Source: Chlorokybus atmophyticus
Taxonomy: Eukaryota; Plantae; Mesostigma and Chlorokybus algae
Assembly (NCBI GenBank): GCA_009103225.1
Contig: RHPI01000008.1
Coordinates: 486,015 to 550,014 of the forward strand
Length of the DNA: 64,000 nt
Direction of reading: 5' to 3'
The notes under the pieces were generated by a model. The model worked only from the letters and a program-made list of their open reading frames with translations, searched no databases and was not told the DNA's origin. Below are positions 2,722 through 23,082 of the stretch, piece after piece. The translations under genes and the position numbers were made by a program. Within the stretch, counting starts at the first letter, position 1, and each line of letters starts with the position of its first letter.

Positions 2722-5183
2722 ATGCAGCGCTGCACTGCATTGAGGCGGCAGCCTGGCTGTGGGGGTGTCATCGTTGCTGTCCTCGTTGTCCACGTCGGCG
2801 TCGTCACTGACGTCAGGGGTGGGTCGATTATTGTTCCTCATTGCAGTGCCCCCACCCCCACCCCCCACCCATCTTTAAGGAGAGACAATCACTTGGGCCC
2901 AGGGCTGCGCCCCAATTGGGCTCTGATCTGGCCTCCTCCTGCTTGGGAAGTGTACAACCTGACTTGGTCAAAAACATTCACTGCTTCAAAGTGAGGGGCT
3001 ACATTGCGCTTGGATTGGCAACCCCTTGTACAATTGTGAACAATTCGCATCACTTACATCACCCCACACGCAATGGCGCTGCACCTGGTCTTCACCTCCT
3101 CCCGTCCCAGACTCGCATCAACAACAGCTTCAAGCAAGGGGGTGGTGCAGCAGCAGGACAGGACCAGCAGAGGACTGTTAGGAGTCACAGTATCATCACC
3201 TACACTAAGACCCAGCAGCAGGTCCTGGACCCGGCCTGCGAGGTTTGTACAGCGGAGGACTGGGAGTGTGATAGTGGTGGCCTCGTATACTACGGGTGTG
3301 TCGGAGCATGAGCCCGAGGATGAGAAGATACGTGATGGAGGGAACGCGCCTATAAGGGAGCGTGAGGTATGCGTGTGTGAGGTCTGGCTGGTGGTGAGTT
3401 GTTGCAGCTGAGTGTGTTGTGCACAAAGCCGAGTTTCGTACGTGCTGTTGTTGCACACGACGTCCCAGTGTGTGCGCAGCGTCAGATTAGCACATCACGA
3501 GTCAGACATATTAGCACATATGTGCGCACACGCGCGTGCGCAGGAGCGTGTGCACTCTATCGCTTGCAGACCGGCTGGTGAGCGTGCACGCGTGCGTTTA
3601 TGTGTACACGCGCGCACGCGAAGGGGGGGGAGGGGCATGACAATGAGTTGCACACCAAAGAACACGAACACACCCACATGTGCACACTGAGTGCGTCCTG
3701 AAGTTCAAACCATCCGAGTACGCGCTGCATCTCGCACATCTGTTTGCTGGCATACGACCGACCAATCGACTGTGTATGTATCTGCACGTCAGTTGATCAC
3801 GATGAAGGAAGCTGTGCGGTCAGACTGCGCCAACGCCCGCCGCGCCATCCACAACGTCCGCAAGGTGAAGTACACAATACTCTACATCACGCTTGCTTGT
3901 GGTGGGTTCCGTGCGCGTGGGCGTGGGCGTCAGTGTGGGTGCGCGCATAGGCGCGTGTGCGTGTGGGTGCATGTGTGCGCGTGTGTGCGCATGAGTGTGC
4001 ATTTCTATGCGTGCGTGTACGCTGGTACATGTGTATATGTTGTTCACCATACCAACAACACCTCATCGCCAGGTTGTAGACAGCGTATTCGCCGCCTCAG
4101 ACCCCGACATCTCCGACTCCTTCCAAGACTTAATCTTCCACCGTGCTCGCGACCGCAAGCGTCGAGAGGAGTCGTCATTCACGCGTGACAAGCGACTCTC
4201 CCACCTCAAGCAGTTGGTTATAATGAGTGTGGCGTGGGAGGCGGTGATGTGGGGCCTGCGGTCGATATCCGCGCTGTACAGACGGTGTTGGAGTCTGCGG
4301 CAAGGAGGCGGTGGTGTTTGTGATGTGGATGGTGGTGTGGGGGAGGAAGATGATGTTGATGGACATACCACAAGCCCAGCCAAGATGATGCACCAAGTGC
4401 TGCAGCGCGCGGAGATACGGCGCAGCGTGCTCAACCTCATCCAAGAGTTTGCCATCCAGGTGAGATTCAACCTGTTACTTGAACATGCGCGCGCGCGCAT
4501 GCATATCACACACACTCGCGCACTCGTGCGCACGCTTACGCGCGTGCACATACCTGCATGCACAAGCATAAGCACACACGCAATCGTACATGCGCATACT
4601 CGCAATCGTGTTGGTGGTGCATTGTATGACATGAACAACTTCTTTCTCCCTCCAGGGTGAGGACCACAACACGCGGGCCCGCAACCTGCGCAGACTAGCC
4701 AGCGACATGAGTCAGCTGGCGACGCGCAACAGCAGTTACGCTGCTGCGCCCCGCACGGACCCGTTCCTCGACCTGCTGGGGACAAACAACCTCCTCACAC
4801 CCTCGCTACTACCCGACCCCACCATATGGCGCTACTTTGGCCCAGGTAACAATGTTGTGTTGGTGTCACAGCTTTCGATCACGTCATGTGTGACACACCT
4901 TGTGCACATTCACACATGCACATCCATGCCGAGTCGTGTGCACATACTAAAACTACACTGACACACATACGAGCACGCACACGTGCGCGCGCACACACAC
5001 GCATACACACGCACGCACGCACGCACGCACGCCTGATTACAAACAGTCTGTTACTCAACGTGTGGTTTGTCTCTGTGTTCAGATATTGGCACCGAGTTGG
5101 AGGCGTGCGCCGACGAGTTGATGGTTGTTGCCGTCGAGTTGCAGAACGTGTCGCGGATGCCATCGGACTACTTCGAGTATTGA
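2722..5183 (+). CDS. Uncharacterised multi-exon protein, possibly plastid-targeted
   Basis: Six GT-AG-bounded exons (approx. 2722-2990, 3110-3368, 3792-3865, 4073-4459, 4657-4846, 5083-5183) that read as one continuous protein. S/T/R-rich N-terminal region; TGA at 5181-5183. No family recognised and the start codon is uncertain. Confidence 0.6.
3525..5040. repeat. Alternating purine-pyrimidine low-complexity tracts in introns
   Basis: (gc/gt/ac)n runs at about 3525-3620, 3915-4030, 4485-4600 and 4960-5035; also at 28535-28590. Confidence 0.8.
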
Positions 5184-11374: not shown

Positions 11375-11413
11375 GGCGTGTCGTGCGATCCGGGGGGACA
11401 ACTCGTGGACGGA
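11375..11413 (+). repeat. Left terminal inverted repeat
   Basis: ggcgtgtcgtgcgatccggggggacaactcgtggacgga, preceded by aagg. Confidence 0.92.
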
Positions 11414-14400
11414 GTTGTTCCCATATCATGTGATGTGATAGCAATCTGCAGACAACTAAACCACTTTGCTGGCCGCTTGACATCAGCAATCGCATGCAAT
11501 ACCAGCATGCAAGCAGGCAATCAGCAATGCATGTAGCTTTGTCTCTTGGATGTTGTTGAGTCTCTTTGCAGCTATTGAATGCCTTCAGGAGTGTAAGCCT
11601 CTCTGTTGTTGGCAAAATAACGTCAACTACTATGCATGAAGCTAGTGCCTCTTTGCAGCTACTTGTAGGCTTTCAGGAGTGTAGCTTCACCATTGTTGGC
11701 CAAGTAAAGCCAACCACAATTCATACAGCTAGGCCTACACTGTGATGATAATGAGCATGCACTCATGTGTGTGTTGGCAAAGTTCTGCCAACAGCTGCTT
11801 GTACAAGCAGATCAGAATTTGCACAAAACATTTATCTTTGTAACAAGGTCACAAGGCAGGGTACAAACTACTCCAAGGGTCAAGGCTGTATATACAGGGC
11901 AAATGCCTTTGTATCAGGGCACTATTCCAACCACTACACGCACATCACAACACGTTTTTTTTTTGCGGTGGGGGTACATCTCTTTTACTCCATGAGTTCT
12001 CCCTGGCTAGGTGTCTCCTGGCTGGCCATCACCGCCAAAGGACCAGAACACTTTCTGCAGCCGCGGTAGTCCTTGCATTTGTCACAGCCCCAAACATTCA
12101 GCGCGCCCTCAGTCTTACCAGCCTTGCGAACCTTGTTCACCCAGCTTTGCTTCAGCTTGTTGTCCTTGTTGGCCTCAACCCAATGATCTGGGCACCGGGC
12201 GTTGCTGCCATCCTTAGTCCCCGAGTAGGCTGTGAAGCAGAGATGATGTAAGCGGCGGAGACAGCCTTCACTGCGACACACCGTTGGGGTCGGATCGTCA
12301 AAACTGATTGGCATGTCGCAAAGCAGACTGGCGCAGTGCGGATGTGTGTCTGCCACTGGCACTTGCACTGGCTGTGGCGCTGGCTTCTCTGGCGTCGCCT
12401 GCGACACCGGCTCTGCATCTTTTTGGGTTGTTATCTCAACGTTGTGCGCAGGTTCTCTAGCTTTGTCGCTGGCTCCCTGATCATCTGTGATGAGCGAAAC
12501 CACCCGCGATGCCGAGTCTGGGTTGACATCCAGCTGAGTGAGCTTCCCTGCTAGCGGATCTGGAGTCGACTGCAATTCCGCTTCAAGCTTTAGGTAATTC
12601 GCACCGATAATATATACGCCCCTCACTTCGGTAAACTTGTCCACTGCGCACATGATCAAGTTAGCGAACATATGTGTGCTACAAACATACACAACACACT
12701 GCGCTTACTGCTTTGGATGTCAGCGCGGCGTTTATCACAGTAGTCCCTGATGTCCTTCAGCGTGTCTTCCTCGTCTTTTAAGATTGCAGCTGTGCCTGGT
12801 TGAGCAACCCAGCGCAGAAGAAACGCCATGTGCTTGACATCGCCGAAGTTCATGCTAGGAAAAAATTTTAGCAGGCGATCTTGCACGACCTCGTCCTTGC
12901 TCTTGATCCATGGCAGGGCAGCGGCTTTATCTTTAGCAGCAGCTGAGCGCAGTGAGCTATGCTTCTCTTGCTGCAACAAAAGGTGTTGCAGTAAAGTGAG
13001 TGATTTAAGTACCTCCAGATAGCATGACGCTGTTGGCAAAATTATACCAACACTCAGTGGCTTACGTAGTGCTTGAGTTCGCTGCAGTAGCCGTAGAAGC
13101 GGTCCTCGAGCTGGCACATGCTGGTGGAATCGTTGTCTACTGCAAAAATGCTATAGCCCAACTTGAGTGCATCGTCGCTCAGACCACCAGCTCCAGCACC
13201 GAGGTCGAGAACCCATATTTCGCTGTTGCTTTTTCTAGCGGGTAGAAAATTTCCGGCCAGGGTGCTGCACAGTCGTTGTTGCCAGCAGATAGGTGGATGA
13301 CCTTCAACACTGAAGAACTTGCTGAGCCACCAGCGCTTCACAGCTCCTGTGGCTGCCTTTATCATGCCTTCTGAAAAGTCAATCTCAGAGGGTGTTGCAG
13401 CAACGACAGCCAACAATTCATCTTCAGTTTCGCCCTCATTCATCTCGTTATCTTCCTCTGCTCCGTGTGAAGAAGACTTCAGCTCCTCCACGTTTGGCGA
13501 CTCTTCCTCGTATGGTCCCAGCTGGCAGAACTTAGGATGCGAGGGATCATGCCAGACAAAGTCATCCTGCTCGCGCAGCTTGAACCAGGTCTTGAGATTG
13601 GTGACCTTTAGAGAGTCGTCGACTTGCTTGTAAAGTGCAATGAGGACTGGCTCAGTCCGGTCTTGGCTCTTGTATAAGCCAGGGAACACTTGCAGCTCTG
13701 CGCAACATAACAGTTTTCAGTACTGTCGCTGTAATACCGAAAGGCAGTAACTGCACAGACACAACTTACTTGTAGCGGCGTGCGTATATGTAGTAAACTC
13801 GACGATATATGCATCGGAGTTTTGCAGGATTCCCTTGACCGCACTCACGTGATGCAAAGGTACAAAGGCTACAAGCGTCCACCACTTCAGTTCGCTGTTT
13901 TGGCGGCACAGTGCATCAGTTATTTCCTGGAAGTCTTCGATGGTGAAGGCCTTGTCGCGGTCATCGTTCTCTTGGAAAGGAACATCAAAGAAGACAAGCA
14001 ACAAGAGTACCCTTCCTTCCGACGGGAAGGAAGGGTACTCCTTGACTTGCAGCTCTCGAACAAATTTTTGCACAATTTGAAAGCGCGGTACGCATCTCTG
14101 TTTGACCGCATGGAACTCCTGGGGGCGATCGCCACTAGCGTGCACAGGAAAACGCCTGCGTAACAAGCATAGAGATATAGTATGGCTGCATTAAGCACCT
14201 GTTGGTAAAATTTGGACAACACAGCTCCATACTTACAAGGGCATAACCACGGCGCCGGGGACGTCGCCGACCTGATGGGGCTCTGGAAGCGGTATCTTGC
14301 CAAGCTGGCAGACTTTGTCCATGATGGCGAATGGGATATTCAGATGCTTGACTGAGTGCTTCGACTCTAAATCAGCTTTGACGCTTGTGAGCTGCTTGAA

Positions 14401-16822
14401 GATGAGGTTATGACCTCCCTTGAGAAGGACCTCAAACAGCTGGTTTCTGGCTGCATACAACTCTGGCGCCTGATCCGCTAAACGACTTTCACACCTGATG
14501 ACAGTGATGACTCTGTTGATACTGGTTACTGCTATACATACCTGCAATGAACAGACATAACTTTGCATGTGCTAGCTTACCCAGATGTTCCAAAGACCTC
14601 GCCTGGTATCACTTTACATGCCAAAAAAGACACAAAGCGTCCTTTGCGTTGCACATTTAGGTGGTAAGGCTTGAACTCACGATGCACGCTGACATCGATG
14701 GTGCCAGCTTCGATGTCATCCAACACCTTCATGATCTGCTCTCCTGATAGATGAGTGAACAGCTCCAAGGTGTGACGAGGCAATGGCTTGTTGATGTCAT
14801 CAACATCATCAAGGACTTGAAAAAAGCGTTCGTACTGCTCCTCAGTCAGTGGCAGTTTGACCGCCAGCCTGCATAGGTTGATGACGATGGCGAGAACAAC
14901 ACAACATTCTGCAGAGTCATAATGTACGCAAACAAAACTTACGCGATTTCAGTTCTATATTCTCTCGAAATCAGTTAGTTTCTGCCTTTCCACTTAATTT
15001 CATTGTCCATGAGCAAGGCCAGATCCAACAAGCAAGCCTTCCAGCCAGCTGAATACTTGTCTGAGCCTGGCCCAACTACTGGCTTGGCGGGTTTTCCGCG
15101 CGTGAAGTACTTGTCACGAAATGTGTCCACCTTGGTCAGAAATGTGGATGGCTTTTTGTGGTCATCTTGCTCGTTGTGCTGTCTAGCGTACAGATGGGCC
15201 TGCTCGTCGGTTAGCCCGGACACTACCTGTGCAGGGAACGAGATTCAGCTTGCTTTTTTTCGTTCAATTTTTGCAATGCAACAAGTGCTATAAGCTAGCA
15301 TACCTCACACCACTCAAACTGTAGCCAGTCATTATTTGGCTGCTCCTTGGCTAGCTTGGACGCGACGATGAACGAATGATTGCCGCCGAGCACCTCATAG
15401 GTGAAGTCTTTTGCGCGGTCGATGTGGTATTTATTGAAATACTCCTCCTTGACAGGCATCTCTCGTCCTTTGTCATTTCTGTAAGCCAGCAGAAGCCATG
15501 GCTTGTGCCCTTTATTGTAGCCGCTCCTCATAGCCTGTTCCAGATAGACCAGCCTGGATTTTTCAATTTTGCGCGCTTGATGTGCCCCCTCTGCTGGACG
15601 CATTCTTGACAGGCTGATTTTGTACGTATGTGTATCGACATTGGAGAACAGGTGCGGCAGTATAATGGGTGGCAGAGCATCGCCTGCACAGTCGGTAAAG
15701 TTTTGTCAACTTGTACATGCAGTGAGGCATTGTGTTCTGAAGACACTGCGTACCTGCTGCACCCTCCGTGTCTGCAGGGATGACCAGTTTAGTCTTTGGT
15801 GCTTTGCCCTTGCCTCTTTTGTTTGGCGACGGCAGCTGAGAGGGATCAGCACTCAAGTTGAGCGTCTTTGCTGTCATTGCTGCAGCAATTGATAAATCGT
15901 CAGGATGTTTTGGAGCGGGGTTTGGTGGGAAGTACAGCACATAGTGAACGTACCTTGCAGAGACTCATACAGATTGACAAGCGATGGTGGATTATTAGCC
16001 TTGATGACGTCCTTGATCATCATGTCGGAAAGATCCTTGCCGTTCTCTAGACTGACCAGCTTTTTCCCGGTGGGTGTCCAATGGGCTTTATTTACCGGCA
16101 AATCAAACAGGAAGGTCTTGCGATCGGTAAGAAACTCGTCATCTGGGTCTGGCACGCTCGATGGGATGACAAGCACTCGGACTTCCTTTGGTGAGAAAGA
16201 CCATGCATATATGAGACGATACTCGGACTGGTGATCGTTCTGCAACAAACAAGGAATTGATCAACTATCTTTGAGAATAGTAAACAACCAGCGTTAACAG
16301 ACGACATGACTGACCTCTTTTGTGACTGTCAGATAGTAACGCACAGTCTTCTGCTTATCTTTGATCTCAGTTTTTTCTTTTGCAGCCTCCCACTTGGCGA
16401 GATTGTGTATTTTTTAAGCAGCTCCTTTGAACAGCTCGCGTAGATCTTCAAGCTCTTCGAACTTCTTCCAGAAGGAGCCATGCCTGACATGGATCGTGTT
16501 CCCTGCAGTTACATGTATTGTTACTAAAAGTTCTGCTACAACTATAGCAGGAAGTCCGTCAACAAAGTTACAGTGGTAGTCTCCTTTGTCCAGAGCTTTG
16601 TCTTCGTCGTTAAGCTCGTCATATTGATCTGACTCATCGCCAGAGTCAAGATCGGGATTGCTCTGTTTGTCGTCCGTCTCAGGTACACTGTCATCGTCGT
16701 TATCGTTATCGGAGACTTCTCTTTGAGGGGCTCGCAACTTATCTTTGAGGGGATCACTGCATTAGCAAGAAGTATAGAACAATTGTTTCAGTAAGTAATT
16801 TTGGCAGCAAAGCCTGAGACCA

Positions 16823-16990
16823 GTTGGCAAAATTTGGCCAACACGCAAGAGCAGGCAGACTAACAGCCCTGCTAGCTGCTCTTGCTCGTTGGCAAAATTT
16901 GGCCAACATGCAAGAGCAGGAAAACCAACAGCTATATGCTGGTTGCTTTTGCTTGTTGGCAAAATTTGGCCAACACGCAAGAGCAGGCAG
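16823..16990. repeat. Three tandem 65-67-bp units in intron 2 of the cargo gene
   Basis: Core gttggcaaaatttggccaacaYgcaagagcagg at 16823, 16888 and 16955; the intervening sequences resemble each other. Confidence 0.9.
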
Positions 16991-17374
16991 ATCAACAGCC
17001 CTGATGGCGGCTCCATTAGAGAACAGCGAGCCCCTCTCGATATAAGAATATTCTGTACACAGCGCTGGCCTTGATACGGTAGATTCTTTTAACAAGTTTG
17101 TAGACCAGCGGTAGCCCAGCAGCAATGCAGCCAGCAGCAATGCAACTGATCAGCATACTTACAAAAAGCCAGCCCGCTTCTTCTTTGCCTCCTTGGCACG
17201 GCTGCTGCTGGCCTCCGCTTTGCGTTTGATGCCGCTCGCCCTTGTGTTTCTGCAGAGCCACAAAATGTTAGTGATTGTCTACTTCAGCTGCAACAACCAT
17301 TAACAACGCGAAAGCATAGTGCAATGCATGAAGACCCCAACACTAACTCGTGCACACAGTCAACTGTTGCACAC

Positions 17375-17805
17375 ATGTTGCGGAATTGCCAGCAGCACCG
17401 CGTGTCCATGCTGTGATGTTGGCAATTCGGCTGCACCACATGCACCAGCAGCTGTATGCAGCTCTGTCTAGCAAAACATATGCGTGCTGCGTGCTTGCGA
17501 CAACATGTACAAAGCATACACCAATCTGAATTTGTCAAGTTGTCAAGCAGCAGCGAACAGGCATGTTGTTAGCAGCAACATGCATGTCCGTGCTGCTGGC
17601 AACTCTGCTGCAATTAATACAACAAGTTGTGAGCAGCAGTGAACAGCAGAAGGGTTCAATTACAAACCAATTACAAACCCAGGCATTGCTACTTGACAAC
17701 TCTGCTGCATTGAACAAGTTGTCAAGCAGCAACGGACATGCATGTTGCCGCAGAATTGCCAGCAGCACGGACATGCATGTTTGTGCTGCTGGCAACTCTG
17801 CTAGA
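17375..17805. repeat. Fold-back repeat cluster in intron 1 of the cargo gene
   Basis: Module gcagaattgccagcagcac(gg)acatgcatgt occurs in both orientations; 19-bp-stem hairpin with one mismatch at 17750-17801. Confidence 0.75.
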
Positions 17806-18099
17806 AGACGTTAGTAGTAGCTGATGCTTTGGAACAGTTGTGCATAGCAACTTCTGCTGTCTAAAGCTGCAACAGCTAACAACCAAGCTGCTACGCAACA
17901 AAGCTAAAAAGCTTAACAACTCACCTTATTGTCGTCGTTTCCTCGGTGGCTTGACTGGCCTCCTTCTGGCTGTCCTTCGCAGCTTTTCGCTTGGGTCGCC
18001 CCATCATTGCTCACCGCCCGCACCTCGCCCCCGTCGCCCACGCCGCCGTCGCCGTCGCCCACGCCGCCGTCGCCGCCGCTGTCACCGACCACAGCACCG

Positions 18100-18640
18100 T
18101 ATTTCTGATGCAATGAAGAGTCTATTTCTCATTTCATGTTATATTAACATCATTTGCACAAGCTGCATGTGACATACCAGGGTGCTACGTAATGACCTTC
18201 GCCAAATACCCCCAAACTTTTGTTCGTAATAACAATTGCATCGGTTGATTATTCTGCATGAGTTTTTTTGCAACGTGCTCCAGCTGCAATAAAGACTTTA
18301 TGTGCCAAGTGTTATGTTAATTGGAACTCATGTGCAAGAGTTTTATATCCTACCCTACGGGTGTTACGCGCAAGCCAAAATTGGGTGCCTACTTGTGTGG
18401 TGCCCAAGTTGCGTGAGGCAGGCATGCAAAGTTGCAAACGTGTGCTGTGAGCTGAGCAATGCATGTGTACTAGTGCGTGTTGCTGCCAGAGGTGTTGAGC
18501 CTTGGGTTGATGGTGTGGGAGGGGTAGCTTGGCATACACGGTGTGCAACAGCGAGTTGGGGAGTGGGGAGGAACCCTAAGCATGCTACCAGCAGCTTCGG
18601 AGCTAGCTGAGCTTCTGCTTGCATGCTAGCTTACTCTGCG
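18100..18640. promoter_or_regulatory. Probable bidirectional promoter of the transposon
   Basis: Lies between the divergent cargo and transposase genes. GC-rich ggcggc/ggcgac leader-like tracts point outward on both sides (18020-18090 on -, 18645-18700 on +). Confidence 0.4.
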
Positions 18641-19811
18641 ACTACGGCGACGGCGGGCGTGGCGGCGGGGGCGGCGGCGAGGGCGGCGGGTCAGCTGGGT
18701 CGTCTTTGCCAGGCTAGAGTAGTGCGTTTCTCCTTTGCTTAGTCACAATGTAGGCGGTGGCGCCACAATGCTGGCTGCTGGCTAGGCGGTTGAGAGAGCT
18801 GGCGCTGGGCTGGTGAGAACTGCATGGATCAGGTGCGTTTTATGCTGCATGAAGGCAGGTCCAGCTGTGTGTGAGAGCTGGTGAGCAACGTGAATGCTAG
18901 CATCCACATACGAACCATATGTCAAGATGTTCAGCTGCTGTACACGTCCGCTGCTTGTGCAGTCATATTATGCTGCTGCGCTTAGGCAGGTCCAGGCAGG
19001 TCCGCTGTTTGTTTGTTGCCAATTGAAAGCAAGGTAGGTGTGAGGTAGGCATGTGTTTTTGCTATGTGTGTGTAGGCTTTGTTGAACGCAATTGCAAGTG
19101 GTGCCGCTACATGCAGTGCTGTAGTGACGCATTGCTGTGTGCGCAGTTGTTGCGTCTACATTTGTGATTTCGAAGGGTGCGACAACAAGCAGCGGAGTAT
19201 GCTATCGTTCAACAACGGCCGCATGGCGGCTGGCTATGGTGCATAGTCAAAGCCAGAGGTATGGCACCACCAGTCTCTTGCACTGTGCATTGCATGCTGT
19301 CTGTGTCCATATATGCGCTAGAAGGTTTCAAAGTTGGCAAAATGGGTCATAACGCATGCTGCAAACAAGGGTTGTGCCATATGTTCTGTGCACGTCAGCG
19401 TCATCAAAGTTGGCAAAATTTACCAACTAGCGTTTTGGCCTACTGGCAAATGTACTAACTTCGCGGACTTGAGCTTAAGGCTTTGATAGAGCGTGCCGCA
19501 AGATGGTGACCCCGTCTTGTTTGGAGTCGATAGCATGGCATAGCCTTTGTTGTTGTTGGATAAACTTTGCCAACAACTGCGATGATACCTGCATCAGCGC
19601 ACAATACAACATCTCCTCTTGCCCGCACTGCCCGTGTTGTTGGATGAATCTAGCCTCAAGTTAGGTCAGCTATTTTGGCGGTCAAACCAGCACAGCCTGT
19701 GTTGTTGGTAAAGTTTTGCCATCTCCTGGCAGGTCCGCGAATAATGGGTCCCAGTCTCAACGCGGACAACAAAGAGCAAAGGAATACCGGGTCAAGCAGT
19801 CAGTTGCCGCC

Positions 19812-22607
19812 ATGCAGGAGGTACTAGAACAGACCTGTCAAGGAGATGACACCATCAAAGCAGACATTCTGAGATCCCTGCTGAAAGCACCCAAGAATGC
19901 AGCAGCCGTCGCTCAAGATAGCTATTTGGAAGTCGTCAAAAGAGCTCCTGCCTACAGAACGATATCCAACATGTTCAAGTCGGCATACAACAGCATCAAC
20001 AGCTCCCGCTCCAATGCGCATAGAACGGCAAGGAATGTTCTGATGAAAGCGGCAAGATCAGCAATTGGCGACAACAGGTCGGTGCGAATTTCGGAGGTTG
20101 CTTCAGTGCTCAAGATACGTCGTCAAAGGTTTTATCAAGAAGTAACGTACCTGCACGACTGGAGCACTCGAGGGCGTCGTGCACGCAAAGACAAGGTGAC
20201 ACCGCAGATATGTCAACAGATCGAGGACTTTTGGATCCTCAACACCAGAGAGTCTGCATGCAAGCGTGATAAGATGTTGTTGCGTATGTCCACTGGTAAA
20301 CGATTAGCTAGCGAGTATGTCACCAAGCATTCTTTAGAAGGCACGACACAAACGGCACTGTACTTGAAGTTCCGAGCTGAGAACCCACTTATCGACGTGC
20401 ATCAACGAGTTTTTAAGAAGGTCAAGCCATACTATGTAGGAGGACGCGACGTTCGGCATGTGTGCGTATGTTCGCAGCATACTGAGATGAAAGAGCTTGT
20501 GATGGCTTTGTCTCAGTTCCGGCAGAGAAAGCACGCGCATTGTAAATGCCCATGCGATGCGTGTCAGGTATGAATGTTACGGTAAGAGCTTGTGTAAATC
20601 AAAGCTATGCATCTGGTAACAGCCGTGCATGTAGGTCAAAAAAGACTGCACTTGCCGACACCGCTGCAGATGTCAACTTTACACCAAGTGCCGTTTGCTG
20701 GACTCACCACTGTCGGGTTCATCGGTCACCGGCCTGCTTGACTGTACTTCTTGCACTAAGGAAACGGACAGCACTTACTACAACCACCTCTGCATCACTG
20801 GAGACTGCCCTCACTGCGGATGGATTAAGTTCCCGACATGTCCATTAGAGCGATCAGAAAAGCATCAGTTGCTACAGCCTAGGCTCTACGTAAAGCGCAT
20901 GCAGCCAGGCAAAGCGGAGAACGGTGAAGCCACCGAGTACGCAAGAGTAGACTTTCTCAAGCAGCCCATGACCTTTGTTGACTTTATCAGCCGCCTGCAG
21001 AAGCAGCTGAAGGACTTCAAGCTCCATTCGTTCTTGTCGCAGTGGCAAGCGGAGCAGCAAAGGCAGTGCTTACAGACCTTCTGTCAAGGCACGATCGTCA
21101 GCATCAGTGATTTCTCCGAAAATTACGCTTTGAAGCCAAACAACGAGCTCATGCAGCAGCATTTTGCAAACCGCTCCGTGGTGATCTTGGTGCAACTCAT
21201 CTACCGTCACGCTGAAGAGCATGTAGATGGTGAGACATCGACAGACGACCAGCCGATGCGCGTCAAAGAGGTACGCTCATAAGCCTGCTTGTTGGCATGG
21301 TTTTACCAACAGATCAACACGATCATCAGCGGCTTACCGGGTTTTACATTGCAGGTTCATTTTTGGATATCGGATGATCTTCAAAAAGACTCCTTCTTTG
21401 TTCACCATTGCTTGAAACGGCTTCTCAGAGACTACAGAGAGAGAGGGATAGACATGCAAAAGGTCATCAGCTGGAGTGACAACTGTGCAGTCCAGTATAA
21501 GTGTGCCAACCATTTTGCGCAAGTTGCTCAATACAGCGCTCCGGCAGCTTATATGACATCCATACATACAGAAGCAAACGAGTTGAACACCGTTCATATG
21601 GAATGGCATTATCCTTGCCCGCAACATGGCAAGGGTGAACATGGCGGTCAAGGAGGGACACTGAAACGGCACCTGGATAGGGCCAGCGAGCAAAGTGCTG
21701 AAATAGTGGATGCTGCAACTATAATTCAGTACGCGCAACAGGTGCTTAGCCGAGGAGCCGAGTCATCATACGCAGCCCGTGAAGAGCAAGACAAAGCTCA
21801 GAAGCGGTTTGTGCATCTTGTTGAGCTCCATGAAGTAGATCATGACAAGACAGGGCGCTCCTATCGCTCAGTACCAGGCACTCAACAATTTCAATGCATA
21901 AAAGGAACCGGAGAAGTTGAACGATTTATCTCGCGAAGGTTTTCATGCTTCTGCAGCAGCTGCCTAGACGAAGATTACAGCCATTGCCTGAACAAGTCTC
22001 ACGTTCCTAGATGGCTACGACAAAAGCTGATTGCAAGCGAGGAAGACGGAGAAGAGATTGAGCAAGATGTGAGTGCTAGGCTTATGCGTTGGGTTGAGCA
22101 TTGTTATCTAACTTGTGCTATGTGCAGTTGCTATACTTAAACCAGGAGGCGCTGGCGCTTTCCTTGAGCGTCGGAGACACATTTGTGGTGGCTGCGGATA
22201 AGAGCTCCGATGAATATGAGGCCTCTGCACCTTATTGGGTTTTGCAATTGACTAAACAAGTCGCCACGAGTAAATCCACGGCTATGCGGCCCGACGCTTA
22301 TGGAGTCATCATACCTGCAGACACACTATACGTCACAGGAGTCTACTTCCGCAGAGTTGATGACTCGATTGTGACAGCGGCAGAATATCCCAGGAGGTAC
22401 CTATGTTTCCTACCGCCTCAGCCACAAAAGCCTGCCAGATTATCGGTTAGCCTGTTGAGGTGCGTAGCACGTTTTCCGATGGAACGAGAGAGCCGAAAGC
22501 AGAAGCAAGAGAGATTCAACTCGTCCAGAATGACATGGAAAAAGATCAAGGAGTCTGTCTTTGTAATTCCCGACAAGTATCATGAGATGATTTTAGATGT
22601 GCTGTAA
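19812..22607 (+). CDS. Sola2-type DDD transposase, about 861 aa, third catalytic Asp apparently mutated to Gly
   Basis: Exons 19812-20567, 20635-21270, 21355-22068, 22128-22607 join in frame. Motifs: CVCSQH, Cys-rich cluster, SDFSENY, SDDLQKD, WSDNCAVQYK, HGKGEHGGQGGTLKR, RRFSCFCSSC. Two extra 5' exons (18824-18832, 19176-19258, joining at about 19732) are possible. Confidence 0.85.
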
Positions 22608-23043
22608 TAGCTTACATGATCACACACAGTGTCAAAAGCACAGTCGAACAGTTGACTAGATTTGTGTGTTTGTTCATTGTGACCTCCACACTGTTGGCTC
22701 ATCGTGGCCAACTACGGCAGCAAGTGCATGTTGCCACTTCCGCGTAAGACATGCCTTTCAAGACATATGAGGCATGATGTTGGCAAAACTTATACAACAT
22801 CACTACTCACACAACCCTCCTTGAACATAAGAAATTGCACCCTTTATGTGCATTAGTTGGCAAGATAATTCCAACTTCACGATTCACACAACCCTTGTTA
22901 GACACGTGCAATTGTAACCTTTATGTGCAGCAGTTGGCAAAGTTTCTGCAACATGTTTGCGCAACTGTTGTCAAACGTTTTCCAACAAGGTGGTACCTGT
23001 TGTCTCAAGAATCAAGAATAACATGCGATGTGTCAACAACATT

Positions 23044-23082
23044 TCCGTCCACGAGTTGTCCCCCCGGATCGTGCGACACGCC
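23044..23082 (-). repeat. Right terminal inverted repeat
   Basis: tccgtccacgagttgtccccccggatcgtgcgacacgcc, followed by aagg. Confidence 0.92.

Follow-up and report, generated by a model that had tools for sequence, protein, structure and literature searches.

Palindromic repeats spaced along a Sola2-type transposon of Chlorokybus atmophyticus are candidate sites for an element-encoded DNA-binding protein

How does a Sola2 transposon recognise its own DNA? To our knowledge, nothing is known of this, and a locus of the alga Chlorokybus atmophyticus raises the question in a concrete form. The stretch analysed (64,000 nt of contig RHPI01000008.1, positions 486,015 to 550,014, hereafter the window) contains an 11,708-bp cut-and-paste element at 11375–23082, in which two divergent genes, one for a Sola2-type transposase and one for a many-exon cargo protein, lie between terminal inverted repeats (TIRs). 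An earlier note, made from the letters of the window alone, described about 17 copies of a 20-bp palindrome in the non-coding parts of this element and proposed that they are sites for a dimeric protein that the element itself encodes. Here we find about 19 copies along the element, for which binding by an element-encoded dimeric protein is the best reading of the sequence, and weigh which of its two products would be the binder.

The palindrome has the consensus (T)GTTGG-CAAA-N2-TTTG-CCAAC(A), with a 20-bp core. In the sequence logo GTTGG and CCAAC on the outside do not vary, CAAA and TTTG on the inside are less strongly conserved, the centre is A/T-rich, and a T and an A flank the core. A consensus search allowing up to 3 mismatches returned 13 matches in the window, all within 11773–22986, against 0.07 expected. 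With a symmetrised 22-nt position weight matrix (PWM) built from the element's own sites, 16 sites scored 21–35 bits, every one of them inside the element, whereas the other 52 kb of the window scored no higher than 9.8 bits and the best scores in 50 random 64-kb sequences had a mean of 12.9 and a maximum of 19.1 bits. Because the matrix derives from those same sites, its scores are partly circular. Independently of it, an unbiased count of gapped 6-mer palindromes ranked this motif first in the window, and exact GTTGG-N10-CCAAC occurs 10–11 times within the 11.7-kb element. Two other operator-like palindromes, GTACCAT-N4-ATGGTAC and GGACCA-N4-TGGTYC, are both absent from the window. The total of about 19 is made up of the 16 PWM sites, a 19-bp copy at 19409, a half site at 19333, in which the left half alone is intact, and a weak copy at 22693 (12 bits); these three, together with 22967 and the degenerate copy at 19639, are the copies that lie beyond the core set or are weaker than it. 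A palindrome copy was present at every coordinate given in the earlier note; the array was confirmed and only its total had to be raised. The note's remark that none was noticed outside the TIRs agrees with the low PWM background, and since the PWM scan gave no match within either TIR, the palindrome is unrelated to the TIR sequence, as had also been claimed.

The copies form eight groups distributed over the whole element (Table 1). Three copies had been reported near each end: the left three stand, and the right end carries five when the weak 22693 and 22967 are included. Likewise, the array of four upstream of the transposase gene was found, now with five entries that include the half site and the degenerate copy; it lies 90–480 bp before the first in-frame transposase ATG at 19812. 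The left array occupies the region 233–417 bp from the left end and the right one 96–389 bp from the right end. Internal copies number about 11, namely singles in four introns, a triplet in one intron and the 4–5 copies upstream of the transposase, and the set as a whole is not confined to subterminal regions, in contrast to what is expected of the subterminal transposase-binding repeats of TIR transposons.

Table 1. Positions of the palindromes and of the genes and ends of the element, in window coordinates
Feature	Positions	Strand	Remarks
Left TIR	11375..11419	no strand	45-nt arms, 91% complementary; AAGG target-site duplication directly before
Left subterminal array, 3 copies (11608, 11695, 11773)	11608..11792	no strand	PWM 23.4, 21.2, 31.0 bits
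Many-exon cargo gene	11985..18007	-	frame translations and ab initio model; ParB-like, methylase-like, PHD-like by eye
Single palindrome, cargo intron 13065-12971	13032..13051	no strand	32.4 bits
Single palindrome, cargo intron starting at 14236	14201..14220	no strand	29.7 bits; the exon frame has stops on both sides of the site
Single palindrome, cargo intron 15753-15684	15691..15710	no strand	22.7 bits
Three identical palindromes, cargo intron 2 (406 nt)	16823..16974	no strand	30.6-34.6 bits
Array upstream of transposase start	19333..19723	no strand	19333 (half), 19409 (19 bp), 19555, 19639 (degenerate), 19704
Sola2-type DDE transposase gene (putative)	19812..22607	+	4 exons, 861 aa, open in this copy
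Single palindrome, transposase intron 2 (21271-21354)	21291..21310	no strand	27.5 bits
Right subterminal array: 22693 (weak), 22779, 22856, 22933, 22967	22693..22986	no strand	12-27.7 bits
Right TIR	23038..23082	no strand	45-nt arm; AAGG directly after

Exon overlap and spacing were assessed on hand-curated exons in place of an automatic exon chain, which made exons too long over the 5′ portion of the cargo gene. The coding share of the element is 57%, yet no copy overlaps a modelled exon (P about 1e-3, 8 clusters), which bears out the earlier statement that confident exons are free of copies, the cargo gene model being ab initio. The earlier note also placed copies in introns of both genes, and there they are, in four single-site introns and in cargo intron 2. 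Two of the single-site cargo introns have splice-like borders (GTAAGC...TTGCAG for 13065–12971 and GTACGC...TGTGCAG for 15753–15684), with a switch of reading frame between the adjoining exons. Transposase intron 2 is the only intron backed by alignment to intronless relatives: its 84-nt segment is missing in relative P0001, which continues without a break across the junction. Successive groups are separated by 1240, 1150, 1471, 1113, 2359, 1568 and 1383 bp. This spacing is more even than chance, a smallest gap this large having P = 5e-4 under uniform placement and P = 1.7e-4 when placement is limited to non-coding positions (both post hoc).

Four of the eight groups are built of tandem units (87 bp x 2, 67 bp x 2.8, 77 bp x 2 and 65–87 bp). 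The left subterminal units are 78–87 bp long (Tandem Repeats Finder (TRF) period 87 bp x 2), the right ones about 77 bp and 73% alike, and those of the cargo intron-2 triplet 65–67 bp (TRF period 67 bp x 2.8), with each copy of the triplet nested in a longer palindrome of 43–44 nt. The unit sequences of the four arrays differ, and the motif alone is common to all. Such an anatomy could mean that the copies lack a function of their own, as leftovers of repeat expansion or as host-factor sites that happen to be tolerated only outside exons: conservation of the subterminal copies does not exceed that of their repeat units, and coding constraint alone would exclude copies from exons. However, single 20-bp copies sit in four separate short introns, and their flanks share no similarity, so that these copies cannot have come from local repeat growth. 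The absence of the motif from the other 52 kb of the window and the even spacing of the groups also count against this explanation, which we consider improbable.

A palindrome may be kept as a protein site or as a hairpin. If the copies worked as hairpins, either as intronic hairpin RNAs giving rise to small RNAs or as cruciforms, the two halves of a site should change together. In a covariation test, however, the halves of a site paired with their own partners at 6.9 positions and with the partners from other sites at 7.1, with no compensatory change, and single sites retain only 6–8 of 10 pairs. The halves are therefore held to the consensus and not to each other, as would be expected of a dimeric protein site and not of a hairpin, and selection for a hairpin was rejected on this ground. 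The motif length of about 22 nt would suit small RNAs, and the RNA of the intron-2 triplet folds far better than shuffled sequences (z = -6.6); any palindrome array would give so strong a fold. Rfam returned only generic microRNA-hairpin matches, among them some in the intron-2 array, all far below the gathering scores. With half of the copies subterminal, where transcription is not expected to matter, we regard a hairpin function as very improbable.

Together, the element-specific, non-coding and arrayed occurrence of the motif and the lack of covariation between its halves keep a site for an element-encoded dimer as the best reading, as first proposed. We suggest that a symmetric dimer would recognise the palindromes, most likely the transposase, through its helical, helix-turn-helix (HTH)-like N-terminal region. 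The subterminal arrays (3 copies on the left, 5 on the right) would mark the ends for recognition and pairing, and the array upstream of the transposase gene would couple binding to that gene's own expression. Single intronic copies and the intron-2 triplet would provide one site per 1.1–2.4 kb, from which bound protein could bridge or mark the 11.7-kb body, so that the distant ends meet or the element stays transcriptionally open. Transposases have been described as sequence-specific regulators of their cognate copies (bioRxiv 10.64898/2026.08.24.746577).

The choice of the transposase draws on its relatives. Over three exons the protein shows homology, at no more than 38% identity, to proteins encoded without introns in sea urchin, Klebsormidium and metagenomes, and its N-terminus, predicted to be helical, aligns with these relatives over the HTH-like stretch. 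Three contigs with distantly related transposases (L010, L006 and L002) carry arrays of the same style. L010 has its own 30-nt motif in 3 + 6 copies with a period of about 60 bp on both sides of the transposase open reading frame (ORF), L006 has a 19-nt motif in seven alternating copies upstream, containing GTTGGCA, and in three core copies downstream, and L002 has about seven motif copies upstream. None of the three has an array copy inside the ORF, and no cargo gene was seen on these 4.5–5.2-kb contigs. To judge from these sequences, motif arrays are a trait of the transposase clade, in which the transposase is the only shared protein; such arrays next to a transposase gene, on contigs that show no cargo gene, make the transposase the favoured binder, one of the two candidates named in the earlier note. 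The arrays lie at 41–400 and 3943–4390 in L010 and at 650–1060 and 4620–5020 in L006, where they are built as long palindromes; array periods in these two metagenome contigs range from 60 bp to 185 bp.

Several observations weigh against the transposase, and we put its chance of being the binder at about even. A model of its N-terminus (predicted local distance difference test (pLDDT) 68), searched with Foldseek against the PDB, matched nothing at E <= 0.001 and no DNA-binding structure. Internal copies are unnecessary for cutting and atypical of transposase sites; the best-kept copies are inside the cargo gene, the subterminal ones scoring below the internal ones; and in the subterminal arrays, as we read the sequence, the motif is conserved no better than its flanks. 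In the relatives the arrays adjoin the ORF, and their subterminal position is assumed. Finally, the copies are distributed among introns, intergenic stretches, non-coding DNA at the ends, and tandem repeats, just like the sites of an accessory protein, VANC21 of Arabidopsis VANDAL21, whose motifs likewise often stand in tandem repeats (PMC5735166).

This last point favours the other product of the element. The cargo protein, which appears to combine ParB-like, methylase-like and PHD-like parts, could bind the sites and mark or modify its own element along its full length, for anti-silencing or self-marking. The literature lends support here, since besides VANC21 a giant Plavaka transposon of the red alga Bostrychia is reported to have tandem inverted repeats beside a weakly ParB-like accessory gene, PAG3, for which self-binding has been proposed (bioRxiv 10.1101/2025.02.11.637652). 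The three best copies lie in the 5′ intron of the cargo gene, and the even spacing of the site groups would suit a protein acting over the whole body. Language-model features place one exon (15304–15681, - strand) near DUF3723 (0.94), the closest family, and ParB_N (0.90), and are the sole pointer to ParB. DUF3723 is the family of an accessory gene of the fungal Starship giant transposons.

Other results stand against the cargo protein, beginning with the arrays of relatives that have no visible cargo gene. Pfam, PDB sequence and homologue searches for a ParB domain in the cargo exon were all blank, and a single-sequence AlphaFold2 model of it (pLDDT 34) was unusable, leaving a ParB fold unconfirmed. 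Over all cargo exons Pfam gave only weak Methyltransf_25 and RING-like matches and no VANC-homologous domain. At the position of the ParB arginine motif the cargo protein reads GGNHS, and no ParA-type partner is found among the two genes between the TIRs. When the profile of true phage ParB_N-methylases was aligned with the cargo exons by hhalign, the probability was below 1%. Moreover, two in-frame TAA stops (16416–16414 and 14977–14975, - strand) fall within otherwise open cargo exons, so that this copy probably has a broken cargo gene beside an open transposase gene. In a contig of run X1, three extra bases at 14974–14975 would turn the second stop into sense codons. All told, we regard binding by the cargo protein as rather unlikely, and the earlier suggestion of parS-like loading or methylation-target sites for a ParB-methylase was not supported.

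A palindrome in phages bears on the same suggestion. A scan of metagenome contigs for two tandem copies of the motif gave one match, L001, and the same pattern gave none in viral sequences. L001 is not homologous to the element. Its cluster of about 10 GTTGGCA half sites (4930–5085), with one perfect copy of the 20-bp consensus among them, lies 1.3 kb upstream of a gene with true ParB_N and N6_N4 methylase domains and directly downstream of an AAA_25 gene. The contig belongs to a Burkholderiales-type prophage family (L001, L011–L170) in which about 10 GTTGGCA/TGCCAAC half sites surround an AT-rich stretch, followed by DUF6362 and the ParB_N-N6_N4 methylase. In a sample of 160 related phage and prophage loci, the cluster was present in 21/21 loci whose AAA_25 shares 66% identity or more with the L001 protein, compared with 2/55 with a more distant AAA_25. 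Sorted by identity of the ParB-methylase, the same sample gave 17/31 against 6/45, and among methylases 74–85% identical to that of L001 the cluster is often missing. The phage cluster thus tracks the AAA_25 subtype and not the methylase, and L001 was rejected as support for the ParB reading. The cluster belongs with the AAA_25 replication protein, most likely as origin iterons, and the half site and spacing common to phage and element are most likely a chance likeness among very many palindromic site families.

Whichever of the two proteins binds, the intronic copies may tentatively be seen as nucleation points, with transposase or cargo protein docking every 1.1–2.4 kb to coat, compact or chemically mark the giant transposon from end to end. 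Such docking would counter host silencing by keeping the element open, or would bring its ends, 11.7 kb apart, together. The even spacing gives some support to the earlier idea that the protein coats the entire element; we hold this reading possible, though rather less likely than not.

The closest precedents are the VANDAL/VANC motifs and ordinary subterminal repeats. VANDAL21, of the Mutator superfamily, is like the present element a two-gene DNA transposon with an element-specific short motif in introns, intergenic and terminal DNA, often in tandem repeats, and within the 64-kb window our palindrome shows the VANC-type concentration in the element's own non-coding DNA and rarity elsewhere. 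The VANDAL21 motif has a known binder, a protein of the element itself that works along its full length, whereas here binding is a prediction. The two also differ in that ours is a Sola2-type element of a streptophyte alga with a 20-bp palindrome, the VANC motif being a 9-mer; that it has no VANC-like protein and its binder may be the transposase; and that even kilobase spacing has not been described for VANDAL. Transposons with TIRs commonly carry subterminal arrays, such as the AAACGG repeats of Ac/Ds and the 12-bp TnpA motif of En/Spm (for TnpA, see bioRxiv 10.64898/2026.08.24.746577). As in those, several copies of a motif distinct from the TIR lie here within a few hundred bp of both ends, and arrays overlap the promoter. 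Unlike in those, about half of our copies lie deep inside, in introns, and the sites are palindromic. Arrays near the ends and at the promoter are what DNA transposons ordinarily have; the unusual part is the evenly spaced copies in introns, which resemble only VANDAL.

Other known systems share single features. The Plavaka element, too, is a DNA transposon of giant size whose accessory gene is weakly ParB-like and has tandem inverted repeats beside or inside it, but it belongs to another transposase superfamily, the partner domain is a 2-oxoglutarate oxygenase there and methylase-like here, and in our element the same motif also fills the termini and transposase introns; binding is a proposal in both. 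Bacterial ParB-parS offers palindromic sites, some in or beside a ParB-like gene, and the idea of loading and spreading. In our element a ParB domain is unconfirmed, the arginine motif for cytidine triphosphate (CTP) and ParA are missing, and there is no HTH call; its palindrome measures 20 bp against 16 bp in the bacterial system, and the phage test speaks against a link with ParB-methylases. In phage Mu the transposase N-terminus binds an internal activation sequence that aids assembly of the transposition complex and doubles as operator. By analogy, an internal site bound by the transposase N-terminus is what we predict here, with the difference that Mu, a bacterial system, has a single enhancer and our element a spaced series.

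The palindrome provides a concrete 22-bp candidate site for Sola2 self-recognition. For giant transposons with cargo, both host silencing and the pairing of distant ends pose a problem, and evenly spaced intronic self-sites, if they are such, would be a compact answer to one or the other. The VANDAL-type arrangement would then have arisen more than once, here by convergence in another transposon superfamily and in a streptophyte that branched off early. If the copies are only subterminal repeats plus a few strays, this is routine transposon anatomy.

The element as a whole fits the Sola2 type by its AAGG target-site duplication, its 45-nt TIRs and its homologues at no more than 38% identity, a fit to features and not to a named Sola2 reference. 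The AAGG (4 bp) is present at both ends, and 4 bp is the length given for Sola2 (PMC3627910). When a transposase exon was compared with 1.84 billion representatives, no match exceeded 38% identity and no further copy of the family came up. The one sequencing run in which this DNA occurs consists of low-depth DNA contigs without joints. Nothing resembling the element occurs elsewhere in the 64-kb window, which also contains a run of N (an assembly gap) from 39594 to about 40350. An apparent strand asymmetry of the half sites was set aside: exact left halves number 10 against 1, but half scores per site give 10 against 4, which is not significant. Cargo intron 1 (17380–17801) holds a nest of long inverted repeats, including a 52-nt near-perfect palindrome at 17750–17801, and a second repeated motif around GAATTGCCAGCAGCAC, which has TTGCCA in common with the main palindrome and does not score as a copy of it. 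Between the divergent genes, GC-rich short tandem repeats at 18016–18084 and 18645–18690 are inverted relative to each other (46-nt arms, 80% complementary) and bracket a 570-bp centre.

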